Origin: Chara braunii
Lineage: Eukaryota > Plantae > Charophyceae
DNA length: 64,000 nt
Assembly: GCA_003427395.1 (NCBI GenBank)
Contig: BFEA01000029.1
Location: forward strand, 4,433,157-4,497,156
Direction of reading: 5' to 3'
Numbering within the stretch: position 1 is the stretch's first letter; each line of letters begins with the position of its first letter. The translations under genes and the position numbers were made by a program. This document shows positions 934-60,597 of the stretch, piece by piece. Under the pieces are notes generated by a model. It worked only from the letters and a program-made list of their open reading frames with translations. It made no database searches and had not been told where the DNA came from.

Positions 934-1389
934 GCGTTGTGCGTAACCATCCAGAGTTCCATGGCGAATTCTCTCTCCCCCGCCCCCCCCCTCTCTCTCT
1001 CTTTGTGTTGTGCCTGAAGAGGGGAACAGTTTCGCCGGTGCGGGGCCGCTCTGCACTTGTATTCGAACATGAGGCCCCATCCACGATGCGCGCCCCCCGC
1101 CCCCTTGAATCCTTAAAAAAAAAAGGCGCACCCCAACGCGCGCTGCCCAAAAAAAGTGCGCGGCCCTAAACCCAACGTGACTCCGCCGCAGCGCACCAGC
1201 CTCCAGACCCGCGTGGACGAAAAAAAAATATCTCTGCACTTTTTGCGGGTTTCCCTTTGGCCTGCGCCTTGCCCCCGACCATTTTCCCAACACAGGGAGC
1301 CCGGGCTCGCGGGAGCGTCGCGCGAGACCCGCTGTTCCCTTTTTATATATAATAATTAAAAAAATGTATATATATAATAATAGTATAAT

Positions 1390-1862
1390 ATGAGTCGGTG
1401 AAACTCCGACGAAACAGTTTGTCACAGCCCCTCGTTTGTTGTCCTCTTCTCCCTCTCTGCCTACGGTTTACCGGGCAGTTCTGTTTGTGACGATATACAT
1501 ATATATATATAGCCTCCTGATGAGTCGGTGAAACTCCGACGAAACAGTTTGTCACAGCCCCTCGTTTGTTGTCCTCTTCTCTCTCTCTGCCTACGGTTTA
1601 CCGGGCAGTTCTGTTTGTGACGATATACATATATATATATAGCCTCCTGATGAGTCGGTGAAACTCCGACGAAACAGTTTGTCACAGCCCCTCGTTTGTT
1701 GTCCTCTTCTCTCTCTCTGCCTACGGTTTACCGGGCAGTTCTGTTTGTGACGATATATAGAAACTCCGACGAAACAGTTTGTCACAGCCCCTCGTTTGTT
1801 GTCCTCTTCTCTCTCTCTGCCTACGGTTTACCGGGCAGTTCTATTTGTGACGATATATATAT
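1390..1862 (+). mobile_element. Tandem stack of four hammerhead-ribozyme-core retro-units (130-bp period) separated by (TA)n
   Basis: Units start at 1390, 1511, 1641 and 1760 with different 5' truncations, and all end ...ccgggcagttct(g/a)tttgtgacga(TA)n. Units 2 and 3 contain CTGATGA-gtcgg-tgaaact-ccgac-GAAAC, the hammerhead core with stem II. Confidence 0.85.
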
Positions 1863-2420
1863 ATTGTCACATGATATCAGAGCGCCTAAGCGAAAAAAAC
1901 AAAAAAACAAAAAAATCTTAAATTCGTTTTTAATCTTCTTCCTTACAACTCCCCCTGTTCAGAACCTCTTGCGTACAAGGCCGCCCACGTGGATGTAGGT
2001 TGAGCGGCGGCTGCCCCCACCCCCGTGTGTCATATCGACCCACTTGCACACAGCCAAAAGGCAAAGAGGCAAAGAAGAGAGGAAGGGAACAGCCAAATGA
2101 AACAAATAGAACAGAGGGAAACAAGACAGATCCCAGATGACAAGTCCCACATGCAAGCACCGNCTGCTCCGTCAAAGGCCAAACAACGGGACAAGACCAC
2201 CCAGGACAAGACATAAAAAAGCGACGATCCACAGTGTGACAACCAAGAAAAAAAGAGAAGACAATCCCGGATAACGATTCCCACATACAGGCACCGCCCC
2301 GCCTCTCAAAGGGCCGAACAACGGGAAACAACCAACCAGGATGCCAAAAACCCGAATGGCTGGTCCCACATGAAAGCACAGCCATGCCCATATATATATA
2401 TATATATATATTCCTCTCAA

Positions 2421-12048: not shown

Positions 12049-13460
12049 ATCTTTAAATATCAAAAACCTTAAAAGTCAATGCAGGTTGTCGCAGCTTCCA
12101 ACATCGTTTTCCTGGCCAAAAGGGAGCGGTGTGTATGAGGGTTCTTTATTTTACATGTCCCACATAGTTTGTAGTCGGAATTGAACGGTCAAAATCACGC
12201 AATTTTTTTTGCCCTTTCCGTTTCACTTCGTGGCAGGTACTAAAACCCTCTCTTTCTCAAATATTCACGTCGTTTACAATCTGAATATAAGGTACAGGAC
12301 CAGCGAGGGGCGATAGCGGGCTAGAGCGTGATTGTAAACTCATTACAGGGTAGCAAGATTGAGTATAGGGAAAATATTACATCTACTATAACAAAACCAA
12401 GATTGACAAAAGCAAAGCAATGTGATTCGCTTGAAAAAAAACTAGGGGTGGTGGATCCAAGTTGCGGTCTCTCGTACGTTCCACTTGCATGCACATGACC
12501 TCTCCCTGATGTATAATAATTCCTTTGTGTGTCCACCGTCGACTCGAGGATGCAAAGCGGATCGACCTGACCTATGGATACAAAATAGTGCACACTGGCA
12601 AACGGTTACGGACTTGCTGAATCTTCACCGAAAGTAATTATGAAGTGGGAAAGATTCAACGCTTTTAAATTTTTCTGAAATTGGGTTTCAATGATTTAAA
12701 CCACCACTCCATCTGACGTGGTTTAAAAGGTCCAGAAAATGTTAAATAACCTCCCTTTGGTGAATGTTGAACATTCTAAATTTTTGAAGAAATGAAAATG
12801 TTGAATATTTTGAATAATGCCCCTATATCCAAATGCAAATCGACGTTGAAGATTCTGAAAAATTTGAAGCGGTAAAGATGCTTAAAATTTTGAACCCCCC
12901 TCCCCCCCTTTCCCCCGGGATATTTGGGTAAATTTTAAAACTGAAGGTTTTGAAATTTTTTAAGTGGTGAAGATGCTGAAAATTTAGACCCCCCCCCCTG
13001 CCTCCCCTTGTTTTATTTTCTTCAAATAGAGGTTGTTCATAAATTTCAACGTCTTCACCACTTCAAAATTTTCATAAATTTCATAATTTATATAATATTA
13101 AAGTTTAATATTTCGAAAACTTTGGAGTGGTGAAAATGTTGAAAATTTTTTCCCGCCCCGCTTCCCTCTCTTTTGTTTTTTTTCTGGGAGAGGGGGGGGG
13201 GGGTTCAAAACTTCAGAACCTTTGTAAATGCAGAATCTTAGTGGACCCGTTAACCATCTCTCAAATAATGGTATGTAAAAAACCACCATTCGCTTTCTAA
13301 CCAAAATAACACGATTCACCAAAGCAATTTCTCACAACTTCCTTCTAACGCGTAAAAAGAGGATTGAAAATTATAAAAAAATCATTTGATCTACGTCGGG
13401 AGTAAAATCAGACGCTTAGTCATTCCAATATATATATATATATATAAGTATATATATATA

Positions 13461-14188
13461 CAGGGTTACCAGCCCGTACGTACGGAGGCCCCCGGGCGGA
13501 CCTCCGTACGTTCGGGCGTTCGGGGTCTCGTACGGGGTCTGAACCCGACGACGTTCGGCCCCCGCCAAAACTTATTTCGGGGCCTAAACATTTTTTTTTT
13601 TTTATGAATTTTGTTTTATGAGTTCTCTATGACGTCAGGTACATGCCTATAAATTTTCAAGTCATTTGGCTCAGCCAAAAAGGAATTAAAAATCACCAAA
13701 GATGGCGGTGTCAAAACGTGCTCGCCCATGTTTTTGTTTCACTTTTTACTTTTTGTTTTCACTTTAGTTCGGAGTCTAAACCCTTTTATTATTTTTTGAA
13801 ACTTTTTTAGTGGTTTTTGTATTATGTGAAGTACACATCCGTAAATTTTCAGGCCATTAAGCTATGCCAAAAAAAAAAAAAAAATCGCCAAAGATAGCGG
13901 TGTCGAAAACATGCTCGCGCACTCACTAAATTTATTTTTTTTATTTTTTTATTTTTTATTATTAGTATTGGTTCTGTGTATTTCATTTTTATTTTAAATT
14001 TGGTGAGGAATTTGGACGTAATGCTCAAGCAAATTTTGTTGAATTTATTTTTTTCCATAATATATTTTTTTTTCAGATTTTTTTAATGATTTTTTTTATT
14101 TTTTTTTTGTCCGCGTTTGGCCCGAACCGCCGAACGCATCCCCAAGGGATCCCATACGTTCGACCCATCCCGAACGCCGGTTACCCTG
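13461..14188. mobile_element. Non-autonomous DNA transposon (hAT-like CAGGG termini) inserted in (TA)n
   Basis: Ends cagggttacc ... ggttaccctg are flanked by (TA)n on both sides. Subterminal cgttcgg/ccgaacg motifs occur at both ends, with an AT-rich core carrying an internal direct repeat. Confidence 0.7.
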
Positions 14189-14527
14189 TATATATATATA
14201 TATACATATATATATAGGTCAGCAAAACAATTCATGCATATTCTTATTATTCATCCAGCCAAACACCAATCGCTCAATATGTCATTCTTTTAGTTTACTA
14301 CAAATTTTAACAAAGAATAAATTTTTCATTTTCGAACTTTTCCAATTATAGGGGTTCTAATTATTCGAGCTTAAATCATTGCATCACAATTTATCATCCA
14401 TAACACACTAATAAACAGAAACAAAATGAAGGCGGAAGCATTCCACAAAAATCGCAAGGCAGAAAGCCACACAAAGAGACGAGGGAATACAAATATTCAT
14501 TCACGCATTCTTATGAGTCATCGACGG

Positions 14528-43845: not shown

Positions 43846-43912
43846 CTATTTGACGATATATATCGTCACAAATAGAACTGCCATATACGGTTTTCCGGGC
43901 AGTTCTATTTGA

Positions 43913-43947
<35 letters not shown>

Positions 43948-44168
43948 GCCTCCTGATGAGTCGGTGAAACTCCGACGAAACAGTTTGTCACAGCCCCTCG
44001 TTTGTTGTCCTCTCCTCTCTCTCTGCCTACGGTTTACCGGGCAGTTCTGTTTGTGACGATATATATAAATACACAGCCCCTCGTTTGTTGTCCTCTTCTC
44101 TCTCTCTGCCTAATGTTTACCGGGCAGTTCTGTTTGCGACGATGCAGTTCTGTTTGTGACGATATATA
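43846..44168 (+). mobile_element. Second stack of hammerhead retro-units in (TA)n, including one inverted fragment
   Basis: Longest unit at 43944-44059 (ttcagcctcCTGATGAgtcggtgaaactccgacGAAAc...tgtgacga) is near-identical to the 1511-1624 unit. Shorter 3'-coterminal pieces start at ~43846, 43886, 44072 and 44144; an inverted piece lies at 43862-43882. Confidence 0.85.
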
Positions 44169-45832: not shown

Positions 45833-45961
45833 GAACATCATTTGATGTAGCCGCATCAATTTTTATCACATTGTCTCCGTGTGTGTGTGTGGAGAGAGAG
45901 AGAGAGAGCGAGAGAGGCGAACATCATTTGATGTAGTTGCATCAATTTTTATCACATTGTG

Positions 45962-46053
<92 letters not shown>

Positions 46054-47840
46054 CCTTTTCAGAATTGACAGTGATGAAGCGAGACCTTCTGTCTCTCTGT
46101 CTCTGTCTCTGTCTCTGTCTCTGTCTCTGTCTCTCTTTCAGGTACACACATACACACACGAGTACACACAAACACAGGCATGCACACAAATACACACACA
46201 CACACATACACACACATACACACACATACACACACATACACGCACATACACACAGCCCTCCGTCCCGCATATCTGCTTTCGCCTTCAATCCCTGGTCGAC
46301 AGTCTCTCCGAGCTTGGGCAGTGAGCGTGCGATTTAATGGTAAGGGGCAAGTTCAATGCACATGACAATGACAATGACAACAATGGCGATGGCGATGGCG
46401 ATCTCTCTCGCAGTCGCCATCGCTGCTGGCAAAGTGGATGACGACCACATTCTGATTGCGTCAGCAGCGGGGTCGGCCACAAGGATCACGGCTAAGAAAA
46501 AATGGCAACCTTGTTTCCTATGTGGTCTTTTTTTTTTTGCCCCCCCTTTTTTTTGGGGGGGGGTGGGGGTTCTTTTTTACCCTCCGCCGCCGTTTCGTTC
46601 TCGCCAGCGTGGATGGACCGTTTCCTCCTCGTCTCGGCTATCATCGTCGCTCAGCTTATTTTACAGTGCATTTTTTTTTTTTTTTTTTTTTTAATAATTT
46701 AATTTAAATGCTGTGCTTTGGACCGTCCGGCTCTTTCAGCAGAGATGATTCGAGACGTGGCAGCCGTTAAAATTGTTGGAATTATTCTAGGTTTCTTTCT
46801 TTACTTTTGATTTCTTTAATTTTAATTTCAGGAGATTAGCTTGGCCCTTGTTCAAGGGTGAGACGCGGAAATGAAGAAATCAAAATTAAAGAAAAGAAAC
46901 CTAGAATGAGAACGGTGAAAAAAAAAAAAGGAGAAAAAAAAAAAGAAAAAAAGAATGAGAACGGTACAGAAAATTACCGCATCGTCGCCTCTGCGCAAGG
47001 CTGGCGCGCACTGACCGTCCCCTCTCTCTGTCTCTCTCTCTCTCTCTTTCTTTCTCCCAAAAAAAAAAAAAAAAAAAAAAAGGAAAAACTGAGCTTCGCA
47101 GGGTGCAATTTCGCCAGTGAGCCAAGCTTGCTGAGCATTTTTTTTTAATAATGAATTTATTTTTAAGGCCTTGATGATAACGGCTGTTCATCTCGTGTCT
47201 TCTTTTGCAGCATGCATCGTGGATCATCTTTTTTTTTTTTTTTTCCCTTTTTTTTTTTCACAATTTGTAATTTTTAAAAGATTTAATGACGTTGAGTATA
47301 CGTTTGAGAAAGAGAAAGTCAAGAAAGCGGCTGGAATACTCGCAGCATTTTTTTTAAGAAGACAATTTCTTTCTTTCTTTTTATTTTTTATTTATTTATA
47401 AGCGCCTGTGTCTCGATCGCTTCCTCCGTTTCTGCGGCAAATGCCCCTGAGTATTTATAAGCGTTCCTGAGTTAACGTCGTCGGTGCATATTTTGCTGAT
47501 GTGGCACGACTGCCTTTTCCCCCCCTCCGAACACAAAGCACCCTCCTTTTTTTTTTTTTTTTTTTTTTTTTTTTGATGTACAACAAGGCGCACCTTCATT
47601 ATGACGGCATGGAACCGGAAGGATAGCTTGTATACATTCATTCATAAGGCGGGTGCGTTGTGTTCGGGGGAAAACATTGGTCTACATTTTCCTCGCAGTT
47701 GTGTGGCATGGCTGAGCGGCAGATGGCTAGCTGAGCGACGGATGGGGGGGGCGCGTGACGATGCGGACCTGGAGCGAAAAGTAATTAAAGTTTTGTTTTA
47801 AAAAAAAAAAAGAAAAAAAAAAAAGAAAAGTAACAGCAGT

Positions 47841-47932
47841 GTCTTTCGAGACATCCGTTAAAAAATTGGATCGATACAGAGAATGAAGATTAGCATGGCG
47901 CCACACACAAATCGAGAAATGGTCCAAATTTT
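47841..47932 (+). pseudogene. U6 snRNA retrocopy with deletion in the ISL
   Basis: gtctttcgagacatccgttaaaaaattggatcgatACAGAGAatgaagattagcatggc...aaatcgagaaatggtccaaatttt matches plant U6. An A-tract follows, and aaagtaac occurs on both flanks (TSD-like). Confidence 0.85.
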
Positions 47933-48861
47933 ATATTAAAAAAAAAAAAACAAAGTAACGACGCCGGCCGTGGAAGAGATGAAATAGGTGGAGGAATTAT
48001 TCACGGAGAGGATTGGAAAAAAACTTAAAGAAATGATAAAGCCTTCTTTTTTTTTTTTTTAAAGGGTTGAAAAACCCCGATGTGTGCGGATTAAAAAACG
48101 CTGATGCGAGGGAGAGAATGAGGAAAAGAGGAGAGGAGGGATCGTGGTGGCGGCAAACAGGAAGAAAGAATGCAGAGAGAGAGGTAAGAAAGAAAAAATG
48201 CAGAGAGAGGTAGAGAAAAAAGGGCTTTTTTTATCATTTCATTATCCCCAGCCATTCCCCTTTCCCCCTGTTTCTCCCTCATATCCCCTTATCCCCAGCA
48301 TTTAACTCTCCGTTAAATCACCCACCCCTTTTCGCCATCTCCCTCTTTAAATGATCAGGGTCCCCCCTAATTCCGCCCCACAATTCCGCTCGTTCCCCTC
48401 GTTCCCCTTGTTGCCCTNNNNNNNNNNNNNNNNNNNNNNNNNNNNNNNNNNNNNNNNNNNNNNNNNNNNNNNNNNNNNNNNNNNNNNNNNNNNNNNNNNN
48501 NNNNNNNCGACTCAATTACTTCCCACGCCCCCGGCTTTTTTTTTTCCTTCTTTTTTTTTTGGGAGTTTCTTTTTTTACCGTCGTTCCCCTGGTCCATTTT
48601 TTTTATGTTCAGTATTCCATTTTCTTTTTATCATTGCCGTATTCCGTCTAGCTGTTTCATTTCCGTTTTCACCCCCCTTTTTTTTTCCCCCTCTGCTCTT
48701 TAGTTTGCGCTCACGCTATCCCCCTCTTACACTCCAATAGTTAACACCTGCATTGCCCTCTTTCACTATTTTAGTATTTATATTTTTTTCTACATTCGCC
48801 TTTTTTTTTTTTTCCCCTTACATTCGTTTTTTTTTTTGAATTTTTAATCCCGCTTTGAATG

Positions 48862-50184: not shown

Positions 50185-50372
50185 GCTCCAGATGCTGCCG
50201 TGTTGCTGTGTCTATTGCGGGTGTGTGGTTTTCGTTCCTGATACTGATTCTGAAACCTAGCTCTGGGTTTCTCCTTCCGCTTGCTCATGGTTGTTTCAAC
50301 CGTGGTGGTTCATCGCTGTCTGTCGTTCTTTTTCATCCTATTTTGGTTCTATTAGTGTTGAAGAACTATGTT

Positions 50373-50501
50373 ATCCTTCGGGACACCCGTTAAAATTGGA
50401 ACGATACAGAGAAGGGTAATTAGCAAAATGGTCCCTGCGCTTCCAAGGATGACACGCATAAATCGAGAACTATGTCGTTCACTTAATTTCGATTTTTTTT
50501 T
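50373..50501 (+). ncRNA. U6 snRNA variant (gene or pseudogene)
   Basis: atccttcgggacacccgttaaaattggaacgatACAGAGAagggtaattagcaaaatggtccctgcgcttccaaggatgacacgcataaatcgagaa, then a diverged 3' end and a T-run. Confidence 0.8.
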
Positions 50502-52088: not shown

Positions 52089-52126
<38 letters not shown>

Positions 52127-52178
52127 AATTTGGACCATTTCTCGATTTATGCGTGTTATCCTTGGAAGCGCAGGGGCC

Positions 52179-52210
<32 letters not shown>

Positions 52211-52385
52211 ACGGATGTCCCGAAGGACTGGGTTATTTTTTTGGCAATAGGTGGCGGCTAAGTACCCGTGAAACCTGGACAGGATGCCGGATATAGACCA
52301 ACCAGATTCAAGCAAGTACCTGTCAAACCTGGACAGGAATGTAAAAAAAAAAAAAAAAAAAAAAAAAAGACCCTGGACAGGATGG
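51761..52385. repeat. Diverged tandem repeat (about three units) that hosts the U6 insertion
   Basis: Recurring blocks ggtcgatggattggaaaaatc, ttggt(g)atcatct.tgtgggtt, caatag..ggcggctaa and ctggacaggatg. Confidence 0.75.
52127..52228 (-). ncRNA. Full-length U6 snRNA variant, most likely a retrocopy
   Basis: Minus strand GTCCTTCGGGACATCCGTTAAAATTGGAACGATACAGAGAAGATTAGCATGGCCCCTGCGCttccAAGGATAACACGCATAAATCGAGAAATGGTCCAAATT, followed by AAAA(CA)16. Nearly identical to plant U6 except for the 4-nt loop insertion. Confidence 0.92.
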
Positions 52386-53907: not shown

Positions 53908-54035
53908 CCCAGAGGTAGCGATACCTCTGACAAAAGAGGGCGACTTTACTCACGCCAACCCTGCAACCCTAGTAGACTGTCAGTTCACGCTCCTGACAAG
54001 AACGGCAAGAAGTCTGCGAAACTCGTCCGTCGCAG

Positions 54036-54093
<58 letters not shown>

Positions 54094-54359
54094 GTCATAT
54101 TCGCTATACAGTGTATACACTCAAAAAAAGCATGACTGTGCCAGGCTGTTTCGTCGGACTTTCACCGACTCATCAGGAGGTTGAACCCCGACAGTCAGTC
54201 TGCCCAGCATGCATTTGACTGATGGATATTAAGGACTCACCACATTACCCAGAGTTAGCGATACCCATCCTTGAGAGAGAAAAGTGGTCGACTTTACTCA
54301 CACCAACCTTGCAACCCTAGCAGACTGCTGGTCCAAACCCTCGACAAGAACGGTAGTAA

Positions 54360-54406
<47 letters not shown>
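53908..54406 (-). mobile_element. Two related short units, each abutting a (GT)n/(CA)n tract; one carries the hammerhead
   Basis: 53908-54016 aligns with 54248-54364 (cccagag.tagcgatacc...cgactttactcac.ccaacc.tgcaaccctag.agactg...gacaagaacgg..a.aagtctg). (GT)n tracts lie at ~54040-54092 and ~54363-54406. Confidence 0.65.
54146..54194 (-). ncRNA. Intact type III hammerhead ribozyme
   Basis: Minus strand CTGTC^GGGG-TTCAA-CCTC-CTGATGA-GTCGG-TGAAAGT-CCGAC-GAAACAG: GUC cleavage triplet, stem I (GGGG/CCUC with one G-U), conserved CUGAUGA and GAAA, stem II (5 bp), stem III (CUGU/ACAG) extended imperfectly to gcatg/catgc. Confidence 0.9.
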
Positions 54407-57456: not shown

Positions 57457-60400
57457 ATGGTGTGGTGTGCGTATTGCGGGAAGGACCAGCTGCCTGAGGT
57501 CGACGAGGCAAATGGGTTCACATGCTGCACTGGATGTGGTAGGGTCATCGATGATCACCATTACTCGTCGGATGTGACGTTTTTGAAATCGGCGGATGGA
57601 TCTAGTCATGCAGAGGGGACGTTTGTGTCGCATGGGTCAACGCCTCGGGCCATCACGAGTGCGGGCCGGCAGCTGTTTGGATACCAGGGAGATTCGCATG
57701 AAAAGACGCTCGGCAAAGGAAGGAACAAGATTTACGAGATTGCTGAACAACTGAATGTGAGGCCGAGGGACGATCTTGTCAATGCGGGCCATAGGCTGTA
57801 TACGATTGCGGTGCAGCGTAACTTCACAAGAGGGCGGCGTGTCCCCCAAGTTGCAGCTGCTTGTCTCTACATCGCTTGCCGTCAAGAAAACAAGCCTTTC
57901 CTGTTGATCGACTTCTCTGACATGCTTCAGATCAACGTGTACGTCCTGGGTGCAGTTTTCCTGCAGCTTGCACAGTTGCTGCGGCTTGATGAGCATCCCA
58001 TCATGCAGAAACCGACCGATCCCAGTCTGTTCATACACCGGTTTGCGGATAAGCTTGACCTTGGGAAGAAAATGCACGCAGTCGCGAACACAGCCCTGCG
58101 GCTGGTTGCCAGCATGAAACGTGATTGGATGAACACTGGGCGGAAGCCAAGTGGAATTTGCGGTGCAGCTCTCTGGATTGCAGCACACGTGCATGGCTTT
58201 GAACGGTCCAAGCGTGACGTGGTTTCTGTCGTTCATGTGTGCGAGGTCACTCTGACAAGGCGCCTCATCGAGTTTCAGATGACTCCATCAGGAGGGCTTA
58301 CTGTCGAGGAGTTTGAGCAACGTGCGAAAGCGCTCGAGGCGCAAGGGAACATTCTCTCCCCTCCACCCAAGCTTCACAAAGTTAGTACGATGTCTTCCAT
58401 GTGTGGAGATAAAACAAGTGCTGCACTTGGGGGTGAGCAGGAGGAGGTCGCCGAGGAGGAGGAGCGTGAGCTTCTGTGCGAGCACAAGGGCACAGGTGCC
58501 CCACATTTCTCCCGGGGTCTTTGCCGCTCCTGCTACGAGGAGTTTGCGGCGGTAAGTGGCGGGCTCTGTGGTGGTGAGGATCCTCCAGCCTTTCAGCGGG
58601 CGGAGAGAAAACGGCGAAAACAGGAGGCGGGCACAAAAGATGAGGACGACGACACAGATGACCCTGAAGCTGTGCACATGGGGAAAGCTTCGAAAAGGAA
58701 GCCTGGAAAAAAACGAAATCGGGAGGTTAGCTCTTGCGAGGAGGATTCTGATTACGAGGAAATATCTGTTTGCAAGAGTAATGGCAGCAAGAAGCAGGCA
58801 CAGGGAAAGGGCGGCAGAGGTAGGGGCAGGGCGAAGGGAAGGGATGCAAGAGGGAGAGCCAGAGGTAGGGGTCAAACGAAGCAGCAACGTTCGTGTAGCG
58901 GATCAGGCGAGAGTGATGAAGACAGCTCACTCATGGAAACAGCTGCCAAGGAAGGAAGCACAGGGAAAGGTAGACATAGCCGGGGGAGGTCGAAAGGAAG
59001 AACCCGTCAGAAAAGGGCACAAGAGGTGTCCAGCACATCCGAGGAAATGGATGACAAGGGGGAGGAAAGGAGAGGGAGAGGGAGAGGGAGAGGGAGACAA
59101 GGGGAGGAAGGGGAGGAAGGGAGAGGGAGAGGGAGAGGGAGACAAGGGGCTTCACAGACTGCAAGCATGTCAGAAGATAGTGACTGTGATGACGGCCCAA
59201 ATGCCAACCGCAGTAGGAGTGGGCCTGAGCTGACACTATCAGAACAACATTTGGCCTCGACGTCACAGGCGCCTGGGCAAATGGAGCTCGAACTCGAGCT
59301 TGAAGCAGCACTTTGTAGCAATGAGATGACTAAGTTTTTTGAAGCTGCCGAAGACGGGGGGATAGAAGAGATGCTGAAGGAACTCCAAGGAGCAGCAGAC
59401 AGTTTTGAGGGTGGTGATGAGGTCATGGACGAGGAGCTCCTGCCGTCGGAAATAACAGATGCTCCCGGAACGGCAATTGAAAACGGAAGTTACGATTGCC
59501 TTGACGAAGCACGGAGTTTGATCCTTCAGGGTGAACCTGACAACACCACAGAGTGTCGATCCTTAAGGGCGAACCTGACGACACCTCAGAGCTTGATTCT
59601 TCGGGGCGAACCTGACCACACCTTAGAGCAGGGGGGGAAGGAGAAAGCCCAGACGACTCCGTTGCTACTAGGTAAGAATGGCGGAGAGGGAGATGGGGAT
59701 GAGGTTGAGGATGAGGATGAGGATGAGGATGATAGATTCTCAGATATCGATGATGACGAATTAGGATTGTACATAAACACAGAGGAAGAGGTAAAACTGA
59801 AAACTATGGTGTGGACAGAACTGAATAAAGAGTACTTGGAGGAAGAGGCAGTGAAGAAGGCTGCACTTGACAGACATGAGGCAGCGCTCAAGGCCGCAGC
59901 AGAAGCAGCGGGTACAGAAAGCGTAGCAGCATTGGCCGCAGCTGCTGCTCTGGAGGTCTTCAACAGGAAGAAGGAAAGGGGAAAGAAACCAAAAGTCGCA
60001 AATGCAGCCAAGGCATTGGGAAGGCCAGGCGAAACGGCTATGGAGGCAGCGCAGCACATGCTGGCGAGCAAGAGGTTGAGTTCTAAAGTAAATTATGAAG
60101 CTTTGGCTGAGCTTTTCGGTGATGGCGATAGTGCACCAGGCATTGTTCCAGGCGCAAGTGAAGAACCAGGTCCACATAGAGATGAAGAGGGGAATAAAAA
60201 GAGGCCAAGGACCAAGAAGAGAGTGAGTTTTGCAGATGAGATTGAAGTGAGGAAAGGTGAGAATGATGATGATGACGAGCAGAAGGACGAGGAGGAGGAG
60301 GAGGAGGAGGAGGAGGAGGAGGAGGAGAAGGGTGTTGCTCCCAGTGTAGTAGGCTTTCCGAAAGGTGAAGAGAAGGACGCTGCCGCTGCTCGTGACGGTG

Positions 60401-60597
60401 GTGATGATGAGAACGGTGCGGACGATGATTTGGACGAGGAGGAGGAGGAGGAGGAGGACGAAGGTCTACCTGATGTCCATAAGAGGGGATTTCCTGACGA
60501 GGATGACGAGAGTACTGCTTTCGGTTCATCCCAGTACAGGTTGGCATATGATCACGATGATTTCGACAATGACCCTGGTGATGCTGACTTTTTCTGA
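57457..60597 (+). CDS. BRF1: Transcription factor IIIB subunit BRF1 (TFIIB-related factor), intronless, 1046 aa
   Basis: N-terminal Zn ribbon (CAYC...CTGCG); two cyclin repeats (NFTRGRR..VAAACLYIACR; MKRDWMNTGRKPSGICGAAL); plant-type CEHK..GLCRSCY..GGEDPPAFQRAE block; C-terminal TBP-binding blocks (FSDIDDDELGLYINTEEEVKLKTMVWTELNKEYL; KRLSSKVNYEAL). Confidence 0.96.
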   Translation: MVWCAYCGKDQLPEVDEANGFTCCTGCGRVIDDHHYSSDVTFLKSADGSSHAEGTFVSHGSTPRAITSAGRQLFGYQGDSHEKTLGKGRNKIYEIAEQLNVRPRDDLVNAGHRLYTIAVQRNFTRGRRVPQVAAACLYIACRQENKPFLLIDFSDMLQINVYVLGAVFLQLAQLLRLDEHPIMQKPTDPSLFIHRFADKLDLGKKMHAVANTALRLVASMKRDWMNTGRKPSGICGAALWIAAHVHGFERSKRDVVSVVHVCEVTLTRRLIEFQMTPSGGLTVEEFEQRAKALEAQGNILSPPPKLHKVSTMSSMCGDKTSAALGGEQEEVAEEEERELLCEHKGTGAPHFSRGLCRSCYEEFAAVSGGLCGGEDPPAFQRAERKRRKQEAGTKDEDDDTDDPEAVHMGKASKRKPGKKRNREVSSCEEDSDYEEISVCKSNGSKKQAQGKGGRGRGRAKGRDARGRARGRGQTKQQRSCSGSGESDEDSSLMETAAKEGSTGKGRHSRGRSKGRTRQKRAQEVSSTSEEMDDKGEERRGRGRGRGRQGEEGEEGRGRGRGRQGASQTASMSEDSDCDDGPNANRSRSGPELTLSEQHLASTSQAPGQMELELELEAALCSNEMTKFFEAAEDGGIEEMLKELQGAADSFEGGDEVMDEELLPSEITDAPGTAIENGSYDCLDEARSLILQGEPDNTTECRSLRANLTTPQSLILRGEPDHTLEQGGKEKAQTTPLLLGKNGGEGDGDEVEDEDEDEDDRFSDIDDDELGLYINTEEEVKLKTMVWTELNKEYLEEEAVKKAALDRHEAALKAAAEAAGTESVAALAAAAALEVFNRKKERGKKPKVANAAKALGRPGETAMEAAQHMLASKRLSSKVNYEALAELFGDGDSAPGIVPGASEEPGPHRDEEGNKKRPRTKKRVSFADEIEVRKGENDDDDEQKDEEEEEEEEEEEEEKGVAPSVVGFPKGEEKDAAAARDGGDDENGADDDLDEEEEEEEDEGLPDVHKRGFPDEDDESTAFGSSQYRLAYDHDDFDNDPGDADFF

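Follow-up and report, generated by a model that had tools for sequence, protein, structure and literature searches.

Hammerhead ribozymes have been reported in Chlamys and PLE-X Penelope-like elements (PLEs) of Chara braunii, where two subclades carry canonical versions; one such element, with its canonical hammerhead on the 3′ side, is Chlamys-2_cBra (Craig et al. 2021, PMC8557442). Autonomous hammerhead-bearing Chlamys elements of this alga are therefore already published (PMC8557442). Insertions of Chlamys elements, and of non-autonomous elements derived from them, are often 5′-truncated, occur as head-to-tail multicopy arrays or as inverted truncated copies, and favor microsatellites, with (CA)n and (C)n the usual targets of Chlamys and (TA)n those of Naiads, and the role of the hammerhead in PLEs has been described as unclear (PMC8557442). 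Two other groups of hammerhead elements provide points of comparison. Plant LTR retrozymes have two LTRs of ~350 bp with a ribozyme in each, a primer-binding site, a polypurine tract and 4-bp target duplications, give rise to circular RNAs of 600–1000 nt, and depend on Ty3/gypsy elements (Cervera et al. 2016, PMC4918200). Metazoan non-LTR retrozymes have a full type I hammerhead in every repeat and form unit-length circular RNAs (bioRxiv 10.64898/2026.07.22.740005). In our literature search, no short non-coding element with a type III hammerhead had been described from Chara.

We analyzed a 64,000-nt stretch of C. braunii DNA, hereafter the window, in which an initial annotation had read the array at 1390–1862 as monomers of a minimal hammerhead retrozyme of ~125 nt. 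Our results place the array elsewhere: it is a set of headless, ribozyme-dead 3′ tail pieces, most likely of a longer non-coding element.

Anatomy and hammerhead content of the array

Sequence inspection and Tandem Repeats Finder both bore out the tandem repeat: 1390–1862 consists of four head-to-tail copies of one sequence on the plus strand, which we call family A (Table 1). Tandem Repeats Finder called a period of 130 with 2.8 copies and 99% matches over 1390–1757, and a second period of 100 with 2 copies over 1660–1859. The four units have the 3′ end TGTGACGA in common, followed by TA repeats, and their 5′ ends are variable. Unit 2 runs from AGCCTC through the CUGAUGA box, stem II, GAAAC, a pyrimidine tract and a hairpin to TGTGACGA, and the 3′-proximal hairpin, as annotated, is present in the minimum-free-energy fold. 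The annotated length of ~125 nt applies only with the TA spacer included (~125–130 nt); the unit itself measures 113 nt, and the copy at 43944–44059 reaches 116 nt. Unit 1 departs from units 2 and 3 by one substitution.

The spacer C at 1498/1628 is peculiar to the array, since almost all other family A copies among contigs and reads have T at this position. Units 2 and 3 do not differ from each other, nor do their spacers, both of which have the private C. At least one of the two units together with its spacer is therefore probably a local or same-event duplicate, not an independent insertion. This step could have been either local duplication or repeated copying of one template in a single event.

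Table 1 Features of families A and B in the window. Coordinates are window positions; a point marks features given no strand.
Feature	Coordinates	Strand	Basis
Left flank of array, AT-rich, (TA)n-like, target microsatellite	1338–1389	.	Direct sequence inspection
Unit 1, 104 nt, 5′-truncated inside CUGAUGA box, 3′ end TGTGACGA	1390–1493	+	Sequence inspection
Spacer 1, 17 nt TA, locus-private C at 1498	1494–1510	.	
Unit 2, 113 nt, 5′ start AGCCTC (stem I 3′ arm)	1511–1623	+	Inspection, Hammerhead_3, fold
Spacer 2, 17 nt, identical to spacer 1 including private C at 1628	1624–1640	.	
Unit 3, 113 nt, identical to unit 2	1641–1753	+	
Spacer 3, TATATA	1754–1759	.	
Unit 4, 94 nt, 5′-truncated within hammerhead loop II	1760–1853	+	
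Right flank of array, (TA)n	1854–1864	.	Direct sequence inspection
Cluster of very short family A 3′-end fragments in (TA)n, two direct and one inverted	43847–43915	.	
Longest family A copy in the window, 116 nt, (TA)n-flanked, starts at TTCAGCCTC in loop I	43944–44059	+	
Two 5′-truncated family A copies, 71 nt and 19 nt, abutting	44072–44162	+	
Family B element, 268 nt, (CA)n on both sides	54094–54361	-	
Complete type III hammerhead, the only one in the window	54143–54197	-	Rfam search

Family A units of the array retain only the 3′ two-thirds of a type III hammerhead, with the CUGAUGA box, stem II and GAAA. All four units lack the cleavage site as well as the 5′ arms of stems I and III, and therefore cannot self-cleave. 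Type III is the best Rfam family for the hammerheads of the window, in agreement with the initial annotation, but units 2 and 3 reached only 18.4 bits in cmscan against Hammerhead_3 (RF00008), below its gathering threshold (48.5 bits), and in the alignment gaps stood in place of stems I and III. Units 2 and 3 and the copy at 43944 have the whole conserved core, made up of the CUGAUGA box, a closed stem II and GAAA. Unit 1 is missing the first bases of the CUGAUGA box and unit 4 is missing the box and half of stem II. In the window we counted five occurrences of the 29-nt pattern of core plus stem II, against none in 100 shuffles, and the motif is thus not a product of chance.

Related copies and longer family members

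The second family A locus (43847–44162) lies in (TA)n and holds six pieces that end like the array. Its fragment cluster is made up of direct pieces of ~29 and ~11 nt and an inverted piece of ~21 nt on the minus strand at about 43858–43882, and the 116-nt copy has its 5′ end 6 nt past the cleavage site. Together the two loci contain ten copies of ~11, 19, 21, 29, 71, 94, 104, 113, 113 and 116 nt. All ten 3′ ends are GACGA, followed by TA repeats in nine and directly by the next fragment in one. Location in microsatellites was consistent by family, with all family A copies in (TA)n and family B in (CA)n. Taken together with the metagenome contig L001 described below, the window copies combine an invariant 3′ end with 5′ truncation to varying extents, partial head-to-tail tandems and adjoining inverted copies.

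The intact ribozyme annotated near 54146–54194 proved to be a complete type III hammerhead in family B. It scored 46.7 bits, just below the gathering threshold of 48.5 (local E value 2.4e-9), and has a GUC cleavage triplet, a 4-bp stem I and a 5-bp stem II. By direct reading, loop I (UUCA) is complementary to UGAA of loop II in both families. Families A and B have a hammerhead module of ~40 nt in common and little else, possibly also a terminal TGAC-purine-A motif. A candidate compensatory change between A and B in a terminal helix was dropped, as the paired segments lie at non-homologous positions. A more diverged partial family B copy (53908–54040, minus strand) comes directly after the (CA)n that ends the first copy; it has ~30 nt extra on its 5′ side and no ribozyme part.

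Sequence records aligning to 1300–1950 came from two assembled-contig runs of the same organism (one DNA, the other probably RNA), one raw RNA-read run (oligo-dT) and one soil metatranscriptome. In the 2018 DNA run, word depth was ~60 in the unique flank at 1300–1343 and in the hundred-thousands in the units. The flank depth assigns the window to the organism of that run, and the unit depths show that family A is very abundant. The depths are unusable for counting 5′ ends because reads fit several units at once. The records extended the family beyond the 5′ ends seen in the window. On the 5′ side of AGCCTC the consensus reads GCAGACTGTT, then GAGGGTTC, then the unit, and so reaches 30 nt into unrelated upstream sequence, with support from 101 + 51 + 75 DNA contigs, 250 + 324 raw RNA reads and one soil metatranscriptome contig. 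Behind TGTG, ACGA and TA repeats followed in 172 contigs and 440 reads.

The extended consensus makes up a complete hammerhead, in which CTGT pairs with ACAG, and GAGG pairs with CCTC as stem I. Stem III of these longer copies has 9 bp, two of them G-U, between the 5′ arm GCAGACTGT and ACAGTTTGT; the 5′ arm sits upstream of the window units and is therefore not the 3′ end of the unit. Most family A copies among the contigs and reads have T rather than C as the cleavage nucleotide, where family B has C. This T likely stems from decay of a methylated CpG, since the site lies in CpG context.

Scanning with the ribozyme pattern found no match in the genome-contig collection and a single matching contig in the metagenome scan (L001, BFBZ01014625.1). 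The flanks of L001 are 78–89% alike to another repeat of the window, and its source is therefore the same or a closely related alga. L001 contains a 266-nt family A copy (504–769). It starts where a (TA)n run stops, with 142 nt ahead of its cleavage site, and has a decayed type III hammerhead (26.2 bits; gathering threshold 48.5) and the usual family A 3′ end. An inverted 30-nt family A 3′ fragment (441–470) adjoins this copy. After TGTGACGA come TATATA, ~155 nt of other sequence and a 46-nt repeat of the first 46 nt of the copy. The soil RNA contig has the same junction of 3′ end, TATATA and next sequence with a few substitutions, and the junction is recurrent in that it appears in both records. 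Tentatively, from one short contig and one RNA contig, it may be the head-to-tail joint of a ~430-nt unit. L001, a single short metagenome contig that is possibly mis-assembled, suggests a full family A element of at least 266 nt and a repeating unit of ~430 nt.

The repeat that flanks the insertions in L001 (1–395 and 976–1110) is poly(A)-ended and occurs in the window at 13429–13603 and 13986–14225 on the minus strand. It holds (TA)n between the near-palindrome GGTGACCCTG / CAGGGTAACC, which is filled by hammerhead-element insertions in L001 and not in the window copy. Just upstream of the window (TA)n, at about 14214–14225, 12 nt match the 5′ start of the long family A copy.

A viral scan recovered two near-identical IMG/VR phage contigs with an intergenic type III hammerhead (L003 3890–3945, plus strand; L002 3330–3385, minus strand). 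Their 29-nt core, stem II and loop II are letter-identical to the algal element and their stems I and III differ. This identity probably reflects convergence on the family consensus.

Family A is transcribed from many loci with a strand bias. In 6% of the data of the oligo-dT run, 5640 raw RNA reads fit the 1300–1950 stretch, two-thirds of which continue into unlike sequence, and the bias in read orientation was 2- to 10-fold. Among the best-supported joints of the reads sampled from this run, aligned to a tandem reference, there was no back-joint specific to a ~125-nt circle. At 1756–1761, ~160 raw RNA reads gave two clean loose-end consensuses (agreement 0.93–1.0) flanking the TATATA before unit 4, which suggests an abundant unrelated transcript with a similar short stretch.

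Elsewhere in the window, three U6 snRNA matches occur within 4.5 kb (47839–47933, plus; 50370–50484, plus; 52124–52228, minus). One is strong (82.1 bits) and two are weak with insertions and deletions (47.7 and 44.5 bits), the latter probably pseudogenes or retro-copies. A few kb away, 57457–60597 (plus) is an uninterrupted 1046-aa ORF resembling BRF1/TFIIIB, with a TFIIB zinc ribbon, two cyclin repeats and a BRF1 domain; both the ORF and the U6 cluster are related to RNA polymerase III. Its best match was C. braunii CBR_g31712 (65% identity over 99% of its length), the exact sequence had no match in the protein collection, and it may be an unannotated paralogue. Finally, a long near-perfect palindromic hairpin at 45960–46150 had weak matches to several plant miRNA-precursor models on both strands and looks like a MITE or inverted repeat.

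Proposed origin and rival explanations

We consider it fairly likely that the array is a multi-copy head-to-tail insertion of 5′-truncated copies of a longer non-coding retroelement, family A, moved by a Chlamys-type enzyme. The array is read as a Chlamys-type insertion because its combination of anatomical features is the one described for the Naiad/Chlamys clade (PMC8557442). It would represent one or a few insertion events of a non-coding hammerhead element, for which we infer both the enzyme and the priming step. The full element would carry a complete type III hammerhead with GCAGACTGT/ACAGTTTGT as a 9-bp stem III, a predicted cleavage site of CTGT(C/T) followed by G, a 4-bp hairpin as stem I, and a loop I (UUCA) able to pair with UGAA of loop II. 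Its RNA would be copied by a Penelope-like (Chlamys-type) reverse transcriptase supplied in trans, presumably primed on a nicked (TA)n microsatellite annealed to the UAUAUA directly after TGTGACGA. Synthesis would proceed toward the 5′ end of the RNA and halt early or at the end made by hammerhead self-cleavage, the tandem would be made by template jumping or later unequal exchange, and a few bases may be lost at the TA microhomology join. No Penelope-like reverse transcriptase or endonuclease was found among window ORFs of at least 180 aa, nor was a partner element with GIY-YIG endonuclease and reverse transcriptase found within the window. Most copies have T at the cleavage nucleotide, and ribozyme activity is only predicted. 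These points, together with the dependence of the full-length structure on L001, weigh against this reading.

From cleavage site to 3′ end the element spans 121 nt. None of the ten window copies reaches this length, the three longest having their 5′ ends 6–10 nt inside the boundary, a pattern that would arise if synthesis stops early or at a self-cleaved end. These positions hint at self-cleaved RNA as the template, a reading that they fit but that ten copies do not prove. The copies come from two loci and two are identical, a skewed 5′ truncation could look alike, and the 5′ ends lie 6–10 nt inside the cleavage product and not exactly at +1.

The initial annotation took the ~125-nt unit for a minimal retrozyme in full, reverse-transcribed from a monomer RNA that cleavage between tandem hammerheads had released or from a ~125-nt circle. 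Its own 3′ end would serve as the 5′ arm of stem III, and only 10–12 nt at the cleavage site would have been lost and replaced by (TA)n. In favor of this model, the longest copies have their 5′ ends just past the cleavage site, and the predicted fold pairs the 3′ end with the stretch behind stem III. The 3′ end of the unit is not the sequence that precedes the site. Hundreds of contigs and reads show a different pre-cleavage sequence with its own 9-bp stem III, whose real 5′ arm GCAGACTGT is in the upstream part. Family copies run upstream through the cleavage site, which contradicts a complete monomer or a ~125-nt circle, and the longer copies carry unrelated sequence there instead of lacking 10–12 nt. 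The complementarity of the ends does exist in the predicted minimum-free-energy fold, as a 9-bp helix of TTGTCACAG, just after stem III, with the terminal TTGTGACGA. However, a helix at least as long formed in 986 of 5000 shuffles of the unit body with the same tail (20%), whole-unit folds had ordinary energies (z-scores −0.13 and +0.52), and in neither family does the sequence upstream of the cleavage site resemble the last 50 nt of the unit, so the argument from complementarity falls. A permuted monomer was likewise rejected, with similarity between the last 50 nt and the pre-cleavage sequence of family B and L001 at chance (p 0.33–0.40). The predicted intact junction, TGTGACGA-CTGTC, was absent from the window, where TGTGACGA-CTGT had no match with one mismatch allowed, and from the best-supported joints and loose ends of the four runs, although rare copies with it may exist. 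Across the family, what comes after the 3′ end is either TA repeats or TATATA and other sequence; where TGTGACGA lacks a long TA run, TATATA and ~155 nt of element-associated sequence come next and not CTGTC. We therefore regard the minimal retrozyme as highly improbable. The broader idea behind it, a non-LTR, non-coding retroelement with a type III hammerhead in algal microsatellites, is supported.

The units could also be extreme 5′-truncated 3′ ends (pseudo-LTR/3′-UTR) of a catalogued autonomous C. braunii PLE such as Chlamys-2_cBra, with no separate element. That element has a 3′ hammerhead, Chlamys copy numbers in C. braunii are very high (PMC8557442), and the expected insertion anatomy is the same as that observed. 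We nevertheless think this unlikely: the long copy in L001 begins right after (TA)n, 142 nt before the cleavage site, in non-coding-looking sequence, this stretch returns as a terminal repeat of 46 nt, an arrangement like that of a short insertion unit that is complete, and no coding Penelope-like sequence is near any of the three loci. A plain minisatellite, in which one fragment and its TA spacer were multiplied by unequal crossing-over or slippage with no further retrotransposition, would account for the identity of units 2 and 3 and of both 17-nt spacers, including the C that is rare in other copies, and for the period of 130 at 99% identity. It would account for one step of the array only, leaving unexplained the deviating 5′ starts of units 1 and 4, the spacer of 6 nt between units 3 and 4, the second-locus fragments with the same 3′ end (one of them inverted) and the very high read and contig numbers, and on these grounds it is quite improbable. 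A further reading goes beyond truncated insertion and makes family A a distinct non-LTR type III hammerhead retrozyme class, in which self-cleavage in vivo, or circularization of a ~430-nt unit arising from head-to-tail copies, would determine which RNA is copied into (TA)n by a Chlamys-type reverse transcriptase, with the UAUAUA beside the 3′ end as the anchor. We treat this as rather doubtful.

Relation to known systems

The locus at 1390–1862 by itself adds little, as its copies are dead and truncated and the 125-nt minimal retrozyme idea fails. If insertions of the family do stop at the cleavage site, they would demonstrate in vivo cutting by the ribozyme ahead of reverse transcription. 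A distinct type III non-LTR class, if true, would be a bridge between plant LTR and animal non-LTR retrozymes and direct genomic evidence for a role of the hammerhead in PLEs.

Family A resembles the Chlamys and PLE-X elements of C. braunii and MRC1 of Chlamydomonas (PMC8557442) in its fixed 3′ end and frequent 5′ truncation. As in Chlamys and MRC1, there are head-to-tail multicopy insertions, adjoining inverted truncated copies, a short terminal “tail” repeat (in L001) and microsatellite targets. It also agrees with C. braunii Chlamys in having a canonical hammerhead close to its 3′ end, and the host is the same alga or a near relative. This likeness is one of anatomy and description, the hammerhead type being unstated in the main text of PMC8557442. 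Unlike Chlamys, family A looks short and non-coding, and the targets are (TA)n for family A and (CA)n for family B.

Metazoan non-LTR retrozymes are, like family A, short non-coding hammerhead elements that are arranged in tandem and transcribed (bioRxiv 10.64898/2026.07.22.740005). They have been proposed to be PLE derivatives, and family A is likewise likely mobilized by a Penelope-like reverse transcriptase. In contrast to the metazoan elements, the array repeats hold a partial type III ribozyme without the cleavage site, and the host is a streptophyte alga. The type III hammerhead, the non-autonomous and non-coding character and the green-lineage host are features that family A shares with plant LTR retrozymes (Cervera et al. 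2016, PMC4918200), from which it differs in having no LTRs and one partial ribozyme per copy, with ends that abut TA repeats, a microsatellite setting in which any target duplication would be masked.
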